From contig JADGIF010000001.1 in assembly GCA_018985225.1 (NCBI GenBank), forward strand, positions 60,001 to 92,000: a stretch of 32,000 bases of DNA, written 5' to 3'. The notes beneath the pieces were generated by a model. The model did no database searches. It saw only the letters and a program-made list of their open reading frames with translations, and was not told where the DNA came from. The first letter of the stretch is position 1, and each line of letters begins with the position of its first letter. Source of the stretch: Amoeboradix gromovi X-113 (lineage: Eukaryota > Fungi > Sanchytriomycota). Both the position numbers and the translations under genes were made by a program. Shown here piece after piece: positions 5,445-32,000 of this stretch.

Positions 5445-7042
5445 TTATATAACAGTCCATTGTAAGTACTTTTCGGCATACTCTTCTGCGTCCTCGTATT
5501 CAAAGTTAGATGGTTTAGTGGTTAAGCTGACTTTCAGTAATAGCTCATTCCCTAATTCTGAAATGCAATGCAATGCATAATCCAAGTCTTCTTTTGTGTG
5601 AGCAGCCGACAAACAGAATCTAACTCTGCTAGAAATTATAGGAGTTGCTGGATAACCACTAAATAAGTACTAAATTACACTACTACAACGGCAATGCCTC
5701 TTTCTTTCATTCCTCTTGAAAATCCAGGGAGTTTTGCAGTGTTAAACAGCAATAATGGTACAACTGGCGATGCAGGGTCACCTAGAACACAAAATCCCAT
5801 ATTCTTTAGGTGATGGTAAAAGTATCGACTATTCTCATGGAGCTGATTAATCCGATACAGTCCCTCATTGCTTAAAATACTGGAAAACGCAGCCGTTACT
5901 TGATGAACAACTGGCAACGGCATTGGTTCACAGTACACCATGCCGTGAGAGCTCTTTCTCAGAAACCGAGTTAAAACTTTACTACCAGCAATATAACCTC
6001 CAGCGGCTCCGAAACTCTTTGTGAATGTACCCATTAAAATATCAACATCCTTTGGATTTACTCCTAAATGCTCACATACACCCCTACCAGTATTCCCTAA
6101 TGCTCCGATTGAGTGTGCTTCATCCAGGTATAAGTAAAAATTGAATTTCTTTTTTAATGATACAATTTCTTTTAAATGAACAATGCTGCCTTCCATACTG
6201 TATAAACCTTCTACTACAACTAATATTTTTTTCCAAGGTCTATGAGTCCTGGGTTGTCCTTGAGAAATGGCATCACTTAAGACTACTGCCAAACTAGCTG
6301 CATTGTTATGTTCAAACACCTTTATTGTGGCACCGCTTAACCTAGCACCAGTAACCAGTGAGCTGTGATTAAATTCATCAGAAATAATTAGACTACCTTT
6401 ACCAACAAGTGCGGGAATAACCGTAGAGTTCGTTGCAAATCCCATGCTAATTACAATAGCATCTTCGCTACCAATATATTCTGCCACCAACTTTTCCAAT
6501 TCAACATGTGATTTTGTATTAAAATCGGACCTACTAGCACTTACGCCTAAGCCTTTAGTCATGTTTTCTTGGACAAACTCAGCACAATCACCCTCGCATT
6601 CGGCAAATCCTAAATAATTGTAACTACTCAGATTTAAGACTCTTTGACCGAATCCAGTAAATTGAAATGACTTACAGTAGTCTTCAGTACTTCTGTCTTT
6701 AAGAGTCATAAATCTGCCAGCGGCTGAACAGATAGGCCTATTAAAACAGTCACGTATGCGTCTATAGATTCTGCGTATGAAGAAATTGCTGAAATCATTA
6801 ACTAATGGAGCATATCCGTCATTGTTCTTCAAATGGGAATACTCTTCGCTTTTAAAGACTTTTCCAAAAACATCTCGGATATGTCCAAAAAGTATCAACA
6901 AAAGATAATTCAGGTAAGTAGTTATTATAACATACATTTTCACATCATCCTCAACCTTCTGATGTACATGTGAATGGACGTCACCTTTATTGCTTAATAA
7001 GGAAATTGCAGAATCTTTAGCTCTCTCTTGCTTACCCTTCAT
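5445..7042 (-). CDS. LCB2: Serine palmitoyltransferase subunit 2, two exons
   Basis: [28 protein letters not shown] and the PLP-lysine motif GTFTKSFG. A 20-nt intron gtaatttagtacttatttag (5659-5678) restores [24 protein letters not shown]. Stop at 5445-5447. Confidence 0.95.
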
Positions 7043-8892: not shown

Positions 8893-10032
8893 ATGTTTAC
8901 AACAAACGATGTATTTCACAGTGCTATTGTTAAATTGGAAGGAATTCCATGGGATCTTAGAGTTGAAGAGATTTTAAACATGTTGTACCCTTTTGTGCCA
9001 ATAGGACAGCCTCCAAGATTGCATATACCCATAGATGTAATTACTGGAAAAACGCTTTCTTGTGCGTTTATAGAAATTGGCACTATGGAAAATGCTTATG
9101 CTTGTGTAAGGCATTTGGAATCCAGGAGACCTATTCTACATGGCAAGGCACCCAGGGTTACTGTCTCCAACCACGTAGAATTACAGAATGCGTTCTTTTC
9201 CAATGGAAGCCTTGTTCGGGAAGATGTTATTAAAATATTGACTGTTTGTAGAAACTACAAACGTCAATATAACAGAAGGTGTCCCAATAGACCGTTCGAT
9301 TATGTTATATCGCTCATACAAATATTTTCGTTTGATTCTATCCAAGAGGCAACGCAAAGAGATCAAATCTTTGAGTTCCATAAAAATGCTGTAGAGTTGT
9401 TGAAAATTTTTACTAAAAAAGATTTTTCGTACTTTAGAAAAGACTTATTGTATAGCCTGGTACTATGTGGAGTAGTATGTCTCGGATACACTTTAAAACA
9501 GCGTGAAGTACTAGTCAGAACTAGTCAAATTAATTTACCTGAGCGTTATATTAGGTATTTGAAGGATGAAGAGACTACTGGGCATTTAGTGAGAAGATTG
9601 AAGAGAAAGCTAGAAGTTCCATTGCTGGGTAAGTTTTCAGGGTTTGGTCATACTTTAATTAAACAGTTTACGCACGAAATTCAAATTCCTGATCTATATG
9701 ATTTGAGTAGTCAGATGTGTTCAAGACCATCCGGAGTTGTCCCAGTAGCTAGACATTCATCATATGAAAGCAATAGGTTTGACAGCAATAGTGAAATCAA
9801 GAGATTGACTGAGATAATTATTGAAAACCAAACCCGAATTGGCAATATTGAACGAGCTATGAAAGACTTAATTACAATCAGACAAGCCAAAGAAGCCAAG
9901 GATGAAGCCAAAGATTTTCCATCATTAGATGTAGCTACTGAAGTATCGGAGTTATTTAAATGTGGTGCATGCTGCAAAGTTGATCATTTGCATTCAAAAC
10001 TAGCGGCGCTAGAACCGGAAACCCAAATGTGA
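8893..10032 (+). CDS. RRM-domain RNA-binding protein; last codons supplied by an inserted element
   Basis: VKLEGIPWDL (RNP2-like) and TGKTLSCAFIE (RNP1-like). The terminal TQM* is encoded by the first 12 nt of the element at 10021. Confidence 0.75.
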   Translation: MFTTNDVFHSAIVKLEGIPWDLRVEEILNMLYPFVPIGQPPRLHIPIDVITGKTLSCAFIEIGTMENAYACVRHLESRRPILHGKAPRVTVSNHVELQNAFFSNGSLVREDVIKILTVCRNYKRQYNRRCPNRPFDYVISLIQIFSFDSIQEATQRDQIFEFHKNAVELLKIFTKKDFSYFRKDLLYSLVLCGVVCLGYTLKQREVLVRTSQINLPERYIRYLKDEETTGHLVRRLKRKLEVPLLGKFSGFGHTLIKQFTHEIQIPDLYDLSSQMCSRPSGVVPVARHSSYESNRFDSNSEIKRLTEIIIENQTRIGNIERAMKDLITIRQAKEAKDEAKDFPSLDVATEVSELFKCGACCKVDHLHSKLAALEPETQM

Positions 10033-10303
10033 ATTTCTTAAATAAATCATAGTTCTCTTCAATTTTATTAGCGTATTTTATAAAACATTTAGTAATACGA
10101 ATAACACCATTTAAAGGATTTTAGCGACCTCTCATTGGAACGCAACTGTTGATGAAGAATGAAAAGCTATCCAATTTCGTTAGAGTTGCCACAATCCAAA
10201 AAGAAGATTCAAGGAAGATGCTTAAATGGCACTTACCCAAGTTGTCTACACTGAAGGAGTGTGGGATCTCGAAGTAATTTGAGAGCTTCACATTTAACGT
10301 AGG
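10021..10303 (+). mobile_element. Non-autonomous TnpB/Fanzor-derived element, copy 1 (283 bp)
   Basis: 10021-10167 matches the reverse complement of 24892-25038 (145/147). 10218-10305 matches the reverse complement of 24730-24817 (88/88). Direct repeat CGGAA at 10016-10020 and 10304-10308. Imperfect subterminal inverted repeat aaatgtgaatttcttaaat vs aaatgtgaagctctcaaat (16/19). Confidence 0.9.
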
Positions 10304-10321
10304 CGGAACTCAAGAAATAAT
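10218..10321 (+). ncRNA. Putative omegaRNA (88-nt scaffold plus flank-derived guide), copy 1
   Basis: Manual folding gives an outer stem ttaaatg (10222-28)/catttaa (10291-97), hairpin tctacact/agtgtggg, and hairpin tctcgaa-GTAA-tttgaga (GNRA loop). A pseudoknot cttac (10232-36)/gtagg (10299-303) lies next to the element end. Expression is not shown. Confidence 0.55.
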
Positions 10322-10330
10322 AAAACAACT

Positions 10331-11970: not shown

Positions 11971-14900
11971 TTATTGCACAGCCTCGGCAAAAGTCTCCGA
12001 AACAACTTGAGGTCCATTCTTCAGAGAGGAGTTTTTTTGCACTTTAGTGTGAGTCTGTTTTTGATTGAACTCTATGATCAAATTTTGCAAAAACCTAAAT
12101 AAATTAAATGTACACATATCCGGATAAAGTTTGCTGCTTCTTGTTAATTCTACCTTTGATGAGTATAGTTAATACGAATAATAGAGCAACAGTCAAGCAG
12201 AGCCCCAAGACCAAAATCGTAGATCTCCTTTTTGTCAATAGATCTTCGAGCACAAGAAGACTCATCATATCTTCTAACCTTTTCCAGGATGACTTTGCGA
12301 TGGCAGTGTTCATCCTGTCTGACAAATCATTGCAGTCTATCGTAAAGCATTCCAAAACCGATCTTACGAACTCGTTCACTTCAAAATCCAACGATTGATC
12401 ACAAATATCACTCTCACAATTCTTGTCCAGAATCAAGCCCTTATAGTATTGAGAATGGCTCAATTCCACGAAAAACGGGTCTCTTATTTGTGATGCTAGT
12501 TCGGCCATGTTTTCGGCCATGAAAAGCAAGCTGAAGTTTGCGGCGTTGTAGAATGACTCTTGATGAATTGAAACTAGAGAACTCTCATTAACTTTAAGAT
12601 ATCCTAGAGATTGAATATGATAGAACGAAAACAAAATGTTTGACGCTGCAGAAGCTAATTTTGTTTGAAAATAAGCACAATCTATAGCCTCCTGTCTAAC
12701 AGTGAAAATCAAATACAGAAACACTGCTGTTATACCAACAATTGAAAAGGCCAAAAATAATGACATCAAAAAATTGTTTAAACTACTTTTAACTTTGATA
12801 TTATATGAATCAACGGCGCTAGCTAAATTGGCATAATGATCTTCAACAGATGAAAAGCTTTGGGTTTTAATCTCCAGCGTTAATTCTGAAATTTCTCGAG
12901 TTTTTGTCCGAATATGTACTAACATTTTTTCTTTTTCTCTATCAACGTAATACAAGTAAGTGTAAACGACAGTCGCAATAAGAATGATTGAAGCTGAAAT
13001 AATAGGTAAAAATGAATACTCAAAGTAGTTCAAATTGTTTTCAGCAAATCGAGATTTCAAGTTGTTATTGAAATCGTTCAATCTCCCGTTTTGTAAAATG
13101 CTTGTATTCATAGTAACAAAGCTTATGAATGCTCTTTTTAGATCACTAGGCAGCAAGAGGTTTGTGTACAAAATCATGTGATCGAGATTCGCATCAAGAT
13201 AACTAGCATCAATTAATGTGTACTGAGTTGCATTTATTAAGCTTGGAGATTTTATAGTGGATGCATCTAAAAACTGCATTGTAGCATAGCTATCTAGTCT
13301 CCCCATGTAAATTAAGTTTGTTGTGCACTCTTCTAGCTCTAAAAGAGTCCATGAAAAGCTTTCTCGGCTTTGAAAATAAGATTCGTCTGCTCTTTGTCTC
13401 TTAAATGGTAAAGTGGACGCAACTTGTGAAAAACTTAACTGAAGCGCTACATAATCCATTAGTAGGTAGCCGTTCAGTAACACACATGTAACTAAAGAGG
13501 CAAACAAGATAAAAATTGATATCTTTAATGCATAATGAAACTGTTTTTGCCATTGTAATTGTTGAAAGCGATTTTTTTTCATGTTTTCGTTAATAAGTAA
13601 GAATTTCCCTACATAATCGAATTGAACAAACGAATCTGATCTTTCATTTTCTTCTTCCGTGACAGCGGATATATCCAGAATATCCTTCTCTACGCCTCTG
13701 TTTGTATCAAACATTTGCATGGTCTTTACAACAAAATCCCCAGCTTCTAAATCATTTTCAACAGAGTTGAAATACGACGCCAATAGCCTTAGAGTTGCAG
13801 GATCTTGGGGATATTTCTGAAATAATTCTTTAATACTATGAAACGATTTATAAGCATGATCTACAAACAAGTGCGAAAGTATGTGCAACTTGGCGTCTTT
13901 TTCAGAGTTCGCCGCCTTAAGCAACGCATACAAAGACGTAGATGCTTTTATCAATTGTTTTGCACAAAATTCTTTAAAACTGTCCTTCATTAACACAGTC
14001 AAATCATTTTCTGATGAAAACTCGACCAAATCCTTTAATTTTCTAATTGTAGATACCAATATGAGGGTATATGAAGACAAAATTGTTCTTTTTCCTAAAA
14101 TTATTTGATTTTCAAGTTCGACAGCTCTTGTCTTGTCTTCAATTACTCCAAAGTTCATCCAGCAGTACCTCACAATATTGCATTTTAGCATTGCGCAATT
14201 ATCCAATTTTTTCTCTGCACTATTAAGACAATTGTATACTGTATTAGCTAAAAGACAATGACCTTTATGTCTAGATGAAAGCAAAGCATTGGGAACATCA
14301 TTGCTTTGCTTTGATGAACTTGCAGTTCCACCATTAGAAGTGTCGCCGGAATCGATTTCCTCTACCAAGTTAAAATTAGAAAGAAAATGTACCGATACTA
14401 AAAATTTCAGCAAGCTTTCCATTGGAACTAAAAGTGGCAGCTTTTGGTTATACTCTGTCTGTGTCAAATGGCCTTTTAGTAGGGCTTGTGTGATTCGGAT
14501 GGCATTGATATCAGGTAAGAAAGATCTGATATGTGGTTTCAAACCGCTATAAAGTAGGTAAAACAGCAATGCACCTTGTACAACAGAGAACACGGAGCTT
14601 GAAAGATTTAAGTTTGGAAAAATCAAAAAAACTAACTGGAAAACCATGAAAAACAAATAAGACCAATAAAATGCAAGCTGAACTTGGCAAAGAGATATAG
14701 ACTGAAAAGATGGCATTATGTATCCTCTGTAGCTTAAATGTATTCCAAAGAGTATGCCAACAGAAACAGAGAGAATTGGTGTGTGCAGCAAGAAACATAA
14801 CCCTTGCACAAGTAAAAGCATAATTTCACTAGCTTGAGAATTCCTATCAAATCTTCCAATTCCTTGATGCAGTGGTAATTTATAATAAAGATTTAAATAA

Positions 14901-18308: not shown

Positions 18309-18989
18309 TTACTCATAAAGGTACGACTTCATAGTCTTTCTCATTCTTTGAAACGCAGCTTGCGGACTATCAAATGCAGGTCTTACGTCGCAATAGAAGG
18401 TTGGGTTATCATTTTCTTCTTCTCCCTCATAGTAATCAATAACGTATCGGACATGCCTACCACACCTGTCAATGATCCAATCATGTCTGTCAAAAGCATG
18501 CTGATTGTGCACCATTGCTACCCACTTAGATTTCCAAGTTGGACTACTTGCTTTGCCTTGAAATCTCAACAGCTTGGGATTTGGACATACGCCTTTGTAC
18601 TCACTCTCCCACTTCAGGATTTCCTTCCAGACTTCTTCGTTCAGAAAATTATGTATGTCTACCATAGATTCAATGCTTTCTTCTGGTGCAGCCATGTCTT
18701 TTTTCTTTAATGCGTGATAAAATTGCTGGGGACTGGGATAAGACCAGTTTTCTTCATTGCTGTTACTTCCGGGTCCATCAGCGTGCTCCGACTTAGGTAT
18801 TGTAGATATTTCTCTCTTCTTCGACAGTTCAACAGTTTGGTCTGGATCCTTTTCTTGTGAATATTCAGGCATCAAGTTATTTGGATTTATTTCTTCCTTT
18901 TTGTTATGGTGTGGGCATCCGCTCTTTGATGCTCTTTGAAATGACTCGTTTTTCATATCTAGGGGTAAATCAATTCGCAAGCTCCTCAT
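18309..18989 (-). CDS. HCCS: Cytochrome c/c1 heme lyase (holocytochrome-c synthase)
   Basis: CPH heme motif, REISTIP, WSYPSPQQFYHAL, IHNFLNE, FDRHDW, RYVIDYY and DVRPA. The exact start is uncertain. Confidence 0.93.
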   Translation of the reverse strand: MRSLRIDLPLDMKNESFQRASKSGCPHHNKKEEINPNNLMPEYSQEKDPDQTVELSKKREISTIPKSEHADGPGSNSNEENWSYPSPQQFYHALKKKDMAAPEESIESMVDIHNFLNEEVWKEILKWESEYKGVCPNPKLLRFQGKASSPTWKSKWVAMVHNQHAFDRHDWIIDRCGRHVRYVIDYYEGEEENDNPTFYCDVRPAFDSPQAAFQRMRKTMKSYLYE

Positions 18990-19226
18990 TAAAATCCTAG
19001 TTTTCTAGAAATGGAGAATTTCTATCAAGACACTAGCAGTGATTGTTGCTCCGTTATAGTGACTACTCATCCATACTGAGAAGCAAACAGCGGTGCTAAC
19101 GTACTTAAAAGCTTCATTTTTGTGACCGCTAAAGGTAGTTCAGATGTTCTGATTTTTGCAATCTGGGTAAAATAGAATCGTCAAATGCACCATGGGCATA
19201 GATTAAATAAGAATTAAAAATTTTAC

Positions 19227-20876: not shown

Positions 20877-21427
20877 GCTCTAAGAACAGTAGACTTGGGG
20901 TAATAGAGGGTGACACGCGATTATATTTTACTCATGGCGATAAACTCGTCATAAGTCTATGATTCCCAGAATATCAAGAATTTCCATCCAGAAACTGAGA
21001 ACTCAAGTAAATCTGATAAGCATTTGCGTTTAAAAATGCATATAGACTGTACTGAGAAATTACTGTGGATCTAGCAATACAAACTTTCTGCTATAGATGG
21101 AAGAATTTCGCTGACTGTAAATAGAGTAAAGGTGAAGATCCAGCAACATTTGAGTACTCCTAAAGCATAAACGTTAAGAAGTAAATGGAATGTCAAAGCA
21201 AAAAATTTCTATCTTTTAATCCACAAAAAATGCGTAGTGAACCTACAACCATTGCGATGAAGTCTCTTGTGGCATTGTGAATACTAATTATAGAAGCTTT
21301 GAGCTCTTTAAACTTAGTAAGCAATGGTGAAAGGTCTGGAAAAGAGAGGAACTGGTAACAGCAAATTTTCTGCTAAAGCACACGTTACAAAATAGCAGAT
21401 ATTCTACTCGAGAGTTTTAACTTTTTG

Positions 21428-21893
21428 AGGCATTTTTTGACAAGATGTCTGGTTTTTATGGCGCTAATGAGTTAAATCTGATTAAATAATATTGTAGAAG
21501 CTAACCGTTTAACTGAATAAACCATTTATTGTAATAATATGAGCTAAATCACTCCAACATCTGTCTTTCTATGTTTTACTAGTTGCATAAAAACACCATA
21601 CTCTTGTTATCGCCAATTAAAAATGGCCCTAAATGGTCTCCTGAATATTTCGATTTTGAGAGATCGCTGGCAGATGCAGAATGCAGTCTTTTGCATCCAA
21701 ATATTTAGGAACAAAATTATTATCCAAAGAAAGGTGAAAGGTAGTGGTGGAATATAACGAAGCATTTATTGGCCAAATATACACAAGCTGTGGTTCTCCG
21801 TAGAAAACCAGTTTGGAGGCATTAGCATGCACAAAATTTCATTTTAGACGCAGATAGAGATCATATGGCACAGCAAGAAGCATATATTTGAGA
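21428..21893 (+). pseudogene. Decayed Fanzor2/IS607-TnpB-like nuclease gene
   Basis: From 21681: MQSFASKYLGTKLLSKER*KVVVEYNEAFIGQIYTSCGSP*KTSLEALACTKFH, then LDADRDH in the +1 frame (21844-64), then GTARSIYLR back in frame (21867-93). The order and spacing follow RuvC-II (ExxTSxxC), CxxC...CxxC and RuvC-III DRDxNGARNI. A weak RHFLT at 21428 may be a RuvC-I remnant. Confidence 0.75.
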
Positions 21894-22373
21894 TGTATGC
21901 ATCCTATCTATCCCACTCAGTGTAATACAAACAGCCGTCATGGAGCTTTTTTCAGATTCACTTGGGAAGTCATTGATTTTGTAGTAAATCAGGACTTTTA
22001 TGAGTTTATTGCTCTATGAACAGATATGAGATCCAATTTCAGAAAATATCCCCAAATTCTAGTCGGAGGACCTCTTAGAAAGATGTGTCAGTCCAATAAT
22101 ATGCCATCAAGCTTTCTCTCAATATGAAAAATGCACTGGCAAAATATCTTGGCTGATTAGCACTTGAGCATATGTTGCAATATCTCAACTGATAACCATT
22201 TTTGATATTCTGTCTTGGTGATTGTAATGACGTCTTGTTCACAAACAAGGCAGCATCTGGATGCCTTTCTTTCGTATCTGGTGACATTATAATGGGAGTG
22301 TGTCTTCTAAGTGTTCCTCCTACCTGGAAATGAGGACAATTCGTCAGAATGGGTCCAAGATATTTCGAAACCG

Positions 22374-24713: not shown

Positions 24714-24817
24714 TCAGAATGAATATTCTCGCCTACGTTAAATGTGAAGCTCTCAAATTACTTCGAGATCCCACACTCCTTCAGTGTAGACAACTTGGGT
24801 AAGTGCCATTTAAGCAT
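24714..24817 (-). ncRNA. Putative omegaRNA, copy 2 (same scaffold, different guide)
   Basis: Scaffold identical to 10218-10305. The following flank is AGAATATTCATTCTGA, unrelated to the copy-1 flank. Confidence 0.55.
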
Positions 24818-25038
24818 ATTTTTCCCTACATTAATAAAATAATACCTGGATTAATATCTCTACGATCTTCGTGACCACACGCATTACATTTGCTTTTCAT
24901 TCTTCATCAACAGTTGCGTTCCAATGAGAGGTCGCTAAAATCCTTTAAATGGTGTTATTCGTATTACTAAATATTTTATAAAATACGCCAATAAAATTGA
25001 AGAGAACTATGATTTATTTAAGAAATTCACATTTGGGT
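24732..25038 (-). mobile_element. Non-autonomous TnpB/Fanzor-derived element, copy 2 (307 bp)
   Basis: Inverted partner of 10021-10303. Direct repeat CGAGA (plus strand TCTCG at 24727-24731 and 25039-25043). The unique 74-nt core (24818-24891) encodes KCNACGHEDRRDINPG. Confidence 0.9.
24758..24891 (-). pseudogene. C-terminal TnpB/Fanzor fragment (zinc finger plus RuvC-III) with a putative 20-nt intron
   Basis: KCNACGHEDRRDINP-G[gtattattttattaatgtag, 24826-24845]-KNMLKWHLPKLSTLKECGISK*, compared with the consensus CxxCGxxxxRDxNAAxNIL. Confidence 0.7.
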
Positions 25039-25126
25039 TCTCGGTTAACATAACGAAATTCTTTTTTGGCAGAATGTTATCGGACTTCGTATGAGTTTAT
25101 GAAGTAACAAATTTTAGGCTCTAGAA

Positions 25127-25199
25127 GGGCTTGTGGATTAATGGTTATATCGTCTGACTTCGAATCAGAATGCTCGGGGTTCGAATCCCTGCTGGCCCT
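25127..25199 (+). tRNA. tRNA-Arg (anticodon UCG)
   Basis: Acceptor stem gggcttg/ctggccc (one T-T mismatch), D arm gattaatggttatatc, anticodon arm tctga-cttcgaa-tcaga (TCG at 25160-62), T arm cgggg-ttcgaat-ccctg, followed by a TTTT run. Confidence 0.9.
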
Positions 25200-25229
25200 T
25201 TTGAGGATCCATTTTATAATTATTGATAT

Positions 25230-31434: not shown

Positions 31435-32000
31435 TTATTCATCTAAACATTCTAATGCCCAGTCTGCTATAATTTTTGTTCCTTCAATTGATTTTGGTAA
31501 AAATGATTTGAAAAGTAAAAAGCCATGGCTCCTACATTAACTAGTAATTTACCATCCTGGAATAACTGTTAGCTGTGCTGCATTGTGATCTTTTTGGGCT
31601 CTTCTTAGTTTGGCACACATTAATATCGAGTCGTCCAACAATGGATCTCGATCTCCAACTAAAATACTGACTTTTGGAAACTTGGCTAGAACGACATCCG
31701 GTGCTAATAACGGTGAGAGTACAAAGTTTGTGTTTATTTGAGGGTCCATTGGAGAGTTCTTAAGATAGAGCAGAACAAGCGCCCTCATTAATTCCGCAGG
31801 TAATATTTTATCTTGAAAAAAGCATATTCTAGATGTCAACGCTATATGCCCGCCATCCTTGTTCTGCAAATAATCAAATGTAGCAGGAGAATTGTGATTA
31901 ATGTCTACGTCATAACTTCGCATTAATATCCGCTCATCTTCTATGTCATTTCTATTTCCAAATTCGGACCAAACAGTGGGGTCCTTGTACAAATCTCTGT
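31435..32000 (-). CDS. Hormone-sensitive-lipase-like alpha/beta hydrolase, 5' partial
   Basis: LSPLLAPD...FPKVSILVGDRDPLLDDS. A 21-nt intron gtaaattactagttaatgtag (31532-31552) restores the catalytic GWSHGF. Stop at 31435-31437. Confidence 0.88.

Follow-up and report, generated by a model that had tools for sequence, protein, structure and literature searches.

The closest described systems are the IS607 elements that carry TnpB or Fanzor2 (ISXfa1, CboIStron, IS1535 and the Mimivirus ISvMimi/ApmFz2), the Fanzor2 nuclease NlovFz2 of Naegleria lovaniensis, and the Spu-1 'ghosts' of Spizellomyces punctatus. The IS607 pattern consists of a shared crossover dinucleotide, an upstream preference and no TSD (PMC6188088, PMC4058570, PMC10690162). 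Changes in the terminal left-end bases are tolerated (PMC6188088), and crossover and TAM are coupled (PMC10690162, PMC10711439). The IS607 cores described in the literature consulted are GG, with the motif (T)GGG, and a pseudoknot is required in ISXfa1. Fanzor proteins are marked by DPG in RuvC-I and by an alternative glutamate located six residues ahead of the zinc finger (PMC10711439). For NlovFz2 the measured TAM is 5'-CCG, as given in the original prediction for a Naegleria Fanzor2, and no link to a transposase was found in the same paper (PMC10432273). Spu-1 is a Fanzor1 element; its terminal inverted repeats measure 30 nt, 19 full-length genes are present in the genome, and its ORF-less ghost copies yield omegaRNAs that have been shown to work (PMC10432273).

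The Amoeboradix gromovi family analysed here resembles the IS607 systems in combining a serine-recombinase TnpA with a TnpB-type nuclease, in ending on a common dinucleotide without a TSD, and in having a subterminal imperfect inverted repeat, a right-end pseudoknot scaffold (here predicted) and a target motif that overlaps the core. It differs from them in its core (CG) and motif (CCG), its nuclear fungal host, the micro-intron in its nuclease gene and the lack of a group I intron. Its likeness to NlovFz2 is one of class and motif, whereas a TnpA and an insertion logo are visible only in the present family. Like the Spu-1 ghosts, the mini-elements are ORF-less copies in a fungus and retain both ends and a guide scaffold (here predicted), but they belong to IS607/Fanzor2, have no intact cognate gene in the assembly and are known from DNA alone. 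The family is a rare eukaryotic case in which the transposase, the CCG logo, the CG core and the scaffold are all legible across many copies, and its logo is the measured NlovFz2 TAM, so the coupling of TAM and target is directly testable with an intact relative of the L081 type. Taken as a locus by itself, copy 1 is most likely dead, a relic of a class already known.

The window is the 32,000-nt stretch that was analysed (contig JADGIF010000001.1, positions 60,001 to 92,000) from an A. gromovi assembly of 1319 contigs; the published genome has 10.5 Mb, 36.3% GC and 1167 contigs (PMC8371127). The window holds an inverted pair of mini-elements whose arms match as first described, with 2 mismatches in 147-148 nt on the left and 88/88 identical positions on the right, and AACCG indeed precedes both. 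Copy 1 (10016-10305, plus strand) measures 290 bp with CG at both ends counted, its true boundaries being CG 10016-10017 and CG 10304-10305. The left CG is the left crossover dinucleotide and the last two bases of a CCG target motif, a candidate TAM (10015-10017, plus). The left end (10018-10151, plus) opens with GAA where the family has TAA and includes the subterminal motif AAATGTGAA (10025-10033, plus), one arm of an imperfect 19-bp inverted repeat with the right end (16/19); the two arms start 7 nt and 8 nt inward of the CG cores. The initial 17 codons of an IS607 tnpA follow (10152-10203, plus; ATG at 10152), with 98% DNA identity to the tnpA start of the longer copy L013, and then 14 nt that remain of the Fanzor zinc-finger region (KIQGR; 10204-10217, plus), recognized by alignment to 370-bp copies and to L029. 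Directly after this remnant lies an 81-nt deletion with ATG microhomology that is private to copy 1. The right end (10218-10305, plus), consisting of the last Fanzor codons and a predicted omegaRNA scaffold, terminates in the crossover CG. Copy 1 encodes neither TnpA nor a nuclease.

The insert had been called intergenic, which is not strictly so: copy 1 lies in the last four codons of a single-copy host ORF of 379 aa (8893-10032, plus), the present stop codon of which (10030-10032) is supplied by the element. The C-terminus now reads ETQM and at an empty site would read ELKK, of equal length. Because the ORF and the scaffold are on one strand, read-through from this ORF into the element is possible.

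Copy 2 (24730-25043, minus strand) measures 314 bp with CG at both ends counted and has the same ends as copy 1, except that its left end opens with AGAA where the family has TAA(A). It carries a 57-nt deletion complementary to that of copy 1 and retains the zinc-finger tail along with the RuvC-III motif DINP. The two cores do differ, as stated in the original prediction, but they have no separate origin: since copy 1 lost 81 nt and copy 2 another 57 nt of a common form, they are complementary leftovers of one 370-bp element, the tnpA start being kept in copy 1 and the nuclease tail in copy 2. Captured cargo is ruled out, both cores being parent sequence. Next to copy 2, some 80 nt beyond its left end, lies a tRNA-Arg(TCG) gene (25126-25200, plus) that is divergent from it.

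A search of the A. gromovi genome with a left-end 22-mer gave 25 matches and with a right-end 22-mer 30, about 21 of the latter belonging to the family of the window copies (subfamily A); reversed controls gave 0. Subfamily A comprises about 24 left and 21 right ends. Ten aligned copies had a mean identity of 97.0% (95.3-98.8% pairwise), in agreement with a fairly young non-autonomous TnpB/Fanzor-type family. The usual mini-element is about 370 bp long, and a third private deletion was seen in the copy L030. In the 370-bp copies (L002, L007), the founding deletion joins the frame of the second ATG (+7) in frame to the Fanzor zinc-finger tail and yields, once spliced, a mini-ORF some 59 codons long; unless selected, this would be a one-in-three chance event.

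The long parent looked for was found, in that longer copies with the same ends carry a RuvC ORF. L013 (1.45 kb) encodes an IS607 TnpA and the N-terminal half of a TnpB-like/Fanzor protein. Its TnpA matches the IS607 transposase model NF033518 at 120.9 bits (cut-off 110, also passed by L033), and the domain order, a MerR-like HTH followed by Resolvase, is that of an HTH-first serine recombinase. L013, L041, L071 and L029 (also L044) overlap at 94-100% and together tile the whole parent. Two sister subfamilies, B and C, have 65-72% DNA identity to A and the right end in common with it; on contig C459, a subfamily B copy encodes an intact TnpA (160 bits), and its Fanzor2 shows DPG, the alternative glutamate (NEAYS), a zinc finger and DINP but is interrupted by one stop. 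The Fanzor2 hallmarks LDPG, NEAYS/DEAYS, CxxC pairs and DINP are present in the parent pieces and in intact relatives. The latter, which occur in Logan, JGI and ENA contigs and have the same terminal 13 nt, are 45-68% identical to the A pieces; five of them (L081-L085) have a CCG left junction and the right end TTTAAC(G/A)TAGGCG in common, and the best PDB match of an intact relative is the Mimivirus Fanzor2 9b0l. One close intact relative with 53% TnpA identity (L084/L097, JAYTPS010000196.1) lies on an AT-rich contig that was assigned to a Flavobacterium MAG and is probably mis-binned eukaryotic or viral DNA.

CG was present at all 14 subfamily A right ends that were read. The left junctions were CCG in 19 of 22 cases and CTG in two, against a CCG background of 0.43% per position in the window, a strong CCG bias. 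CCG also stands at the left ends of the sister subfamilies and of metagenomic relatives, despite unrelated left-end sequence and varied flanks. Judged from the junctions, CG would be the IS607 core in this family. The sequence was traced to a single DNA run, of 2021, and to no RNA run. Both junctions are continuous with their flanks in the contigs of this DNA run; no empty allele or excision/circle joint was seen in these contigs, which show presence and not absence. Restoration of ORFs at empty sites was uninformative because most copies are intergenic.

Copy 1 is non-autonomous, very probably arose by internal deletion from an IS607/Fanzor2 element that resides in the nuclear genome of A. 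gromovi, and today is most likely a stranded relic. Directly visible are the ends, the genes of the parent, the CG at each junction, the preference for CCG, the deletion structure, the conserved fold of the scaffold and the intron. By analogy with IS607 biochemistry, TnpA supplied in trans would have excised copy 1 as a circle, and the circle would have been integrated by crossover at CG in an (A)CCG target, leaving no TSD. While the Fanzor2 was intact, RNA running from the right end into the flank would have guided cutting of the empty CCG-plus-flank allele and favoured retention of the copy. At present the scaffold looks usable, the cognate nuclease is not in the assembly, and the stranded state is the most likely one.

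The right 88 nt are predicted to form a guide-RNA (omegaRNA) scaffold with a pseudoknot, the loop GTCTAC (10244-10249) pairing with GTAGGC (10299-10304) and a long hairpin occupying 10257-10295. Folding of the last 88 nt gave z=-2.2 in copy 1 and -4.7 and -3.2 in intact relatives. The small hairpin, the 6-bp pseudoknot to the terminal GTAGGC and the long hairpin were 85% paired in 13 related sequences (slid controls 24-44%), seven pairs being changed on both sides and the covariation score being reached by 0 of 500 shuffles, figures that are inflated by the relatedness of the 13 sequences and by partial overlap with coding sequence. The pseudoknot was 96% paired with one compensatory change, and hairpin and pseudoknot change together in the most distant relative. 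The omegaRNA-like right end of the original prediction thus gained covariation support as a predicted fold. Searches for the right end gave no Rfam match to the scaffold and no IMG/VR match to the pattern. The predicted guide in the host flank (10306-10325, plus), placed by IS607 TnpB rules (PMC10711439), matches only the empty allele of the copy 1 site, and no exact CCG-plus-guide site was found elsewhere in the genome.

Every Fanzor of the copy 1 lineage in the assembly is broken or deleted. Open frames around the cognate C-terminal matches reach at most 220 aa, and RuvC sequence of subfamily A is confined to deleted or stop-containing copies. The candidate C392 (L068) was rejected as a spliced intact Fanzor, its first frameshift being a deletion before DPG and not an intron. 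Among 560 TnpB zinc-ribbon candidates in the genome, 150 were scored, and the sole long open frame was an intact 671-aa Fanzor2 ORF on contig C542 (L079:974-2989, minus) with DPG, alternative glutamate, zinc finger and DRD. It belongs to another IS607 family and overprints its own broken tnpA; it was rejected as the cognate nuclease on the basis of 25-36% identity to the lineage and a different right end. An intact cognate nuclease in the same genome, as expected beside a ghost guide donor, was not found in this fragmented assembly filtered for bacterial-looking contigs, from which an intact parent could therefore be missing. What is on paper a ghost guide locus thus fails for want of a cognate nuclease in the assembly, and the proposal that the mini-copies supply guides in trans, a hypothesis, is unsupported by the assembly. 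A second Fanzor2-type family, which is more abundant and has the right end GGACTTTTAACGAGGAG, is represented in the window by decayed remnants at 18980-19069 (minus), 20945-20996 (minus) and 21730-22004 (plus), and was also found beside many of the loci examined.

The main alternative, which we consider unlikely, is a live guide-donor system in which an unassembled intact Fanzor2 acts with transcribed mini-copies and homing continues now, the flank matches and private deletions being gap-repair footprints. Copy 1 keeps exactly the 88-nt scaffold, in sense orientation in a host 3' end; many copies lie at contig ends, which suggests collapsed repeats; and Spu-1 ghost omegaRNAs work (PMC10432273). 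Against it are the short cognate frames, the stop in C459 and the frameshift deletion in C392, and the fact that the only intact Fanzor among the 150 scored is from another family. The left-end changes bear on both sides. Copies 1 and 2 have 3-4 extra matching nt beyond CG, their GAA and AGAA equalling their own right flanks, and over all ten complete copies the excess of left-end/right-flank matching reached P=0.017-0.03 by permutation, values that are post hoc and driven by two copies. The private-deletion copy L030 has no such match, and terminal left-end bases are known to tolerate change. The matched bases may have been left where a flap was incompletely trimmed while the gap in a cut empty allele was repaired, an event that would also account for the private deletions; chance in a change-tolerant position is another reading. 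It is likewise doubtful that the window copies are footprints of Fanzor-driven homing (left ends overwritten by flank, plus private microhomology deletions) from a CG-core, CCG-TAM IS607 element whose nuclease of about 600 aa starts 7 nt after the tnpA ATG and overprints the whole transposase gene. Two further flank resemblances, a match at 8 of the first 9 left-end nt to the right flank in L068 and ATTACCT on both sides of L013, are possibly due to chance or target similarity.

It is very improbable that the family is a cut-and-paste element of the TIR/TSD kind (of the Fanzor2* type or a Spu-1-like ghost) that acquired its Fanzor2 by capture and makes 5-bp TSDs. The direct repeats first reported, CGGAA and CGAGA(A), do flank copies 1 and 2 (5-6 bp), and there is a subterminal imperfect inverted repeat. 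The repeats arise because the first left-end bases depart from TAA(A) and equal the own right flank; the eight other complete copies share CG only, with 7 nt of flank matching beyond CG observed against 7.1 expected (permutation, P=0.75), and rule out a 5-bp TSD. As described for IS607, this inverted repeat lies internally and is asymmetric, and the junctions largely refute this alternative. The parent transposase is a serine recombinase and not an unrelated DDE enzyme, and in place of a Spu-1-like TIR/TSD parent an IS607 element with a CG core and no TSD was found.

The window copies lie among eukaryotic genes (CSE1, TTL, PEX11, SUI1), and a protein of a sister copy is in EukProt as EP00835 Amoeboradix gromovi. 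A host-type GT-AG spliceosomal intron of 20 nt (24826-24845, minus) follows directly after DINP in the Fanzor gene; its removal restores PGKNMLKW. It is 20 nt long in subfamily A and 19 nt at the same site in C, and the site is unoccupied in subfamily B and the metagenomic relatives. Copy 2 keeps the intron, and copy 1 lost it within its deletion. An intron of the same size and grammar (20 nt; 5659-5678, minus) was identified by frame continuity, with exons translated separately, in the aminotransferase gene of the window, which we take to be serine palmitoyltransferase-like. Candidate host introns of the 19-21 nt class lie at 12095-12113 and 31532-31552 (both minus). The host-type intron indicates, at the sequence level, that in the A. 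gromovi lineage the element existed as a nuclear transcript; intron gain by Fanzors was already known (PMC10530073). Bacterial or viral contamination or an amplification chimera is least probable of all. Amplification of the genome from few cells and the mostly prokaryotic or viral occurrence of IS607 speak for it, but copies lie among eukaryotic genes at >20 different sites, and the host-type micro-intron and the run contigs that carry both junctions continuous with the flanks refute it.

The Fanzor frame of C459 and of five intact relatives begins at a second ATG, located 7 nt downstream of that of tnpA, and stays open through the whole of tnpA; copy 1 retains both ATGs, the second at 10159 (plus). 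The +1 frame had no stop within 160 codons in 42 of 74 tnpA genes that are followed by a tnpB in the same orientation, where synonymous shuffling predicts 2.3 such genes, and the mean number of stops in these 74 genes was 0.86 versus 3.62, in a sample that was seeded with overprinted elements and is not phylogenetically independent. Six tnpA genes with tnpB placed elsewhere, which are much more AT-rich, had no stop depletion (27.5 vs 28.0). The full N-terminal extension was present in 84 of the 151 top protein clusters. Cyanobacterial and viral elements likewise have an open +1 frame, their second ATG lying at +4, +10 or +13. Overprinting in cyanobacterial pro-Fanzors and giant viruses makes it a clade-wide trait, not one special to the copy 1 locus, and weakens the idea of a eukaryote-specific leaky-scanning adaptation. 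Partial tnpA-tnpB overlap has been described (PMC9956272); full overprinting of tnpA by the nuclease frame was not found in the literature searched, a search that left many journals uncovered. The overprinted N-terminus may account for the long disordered N-termini reported for Fanzor2 proteins. Across the pro-Fanzor/Fanzor2 clade (L081-L095, L098-L256), the IS607 tnpA +1 frame is stop-free, and the second ATG is at +4, +7, +10 or +13.
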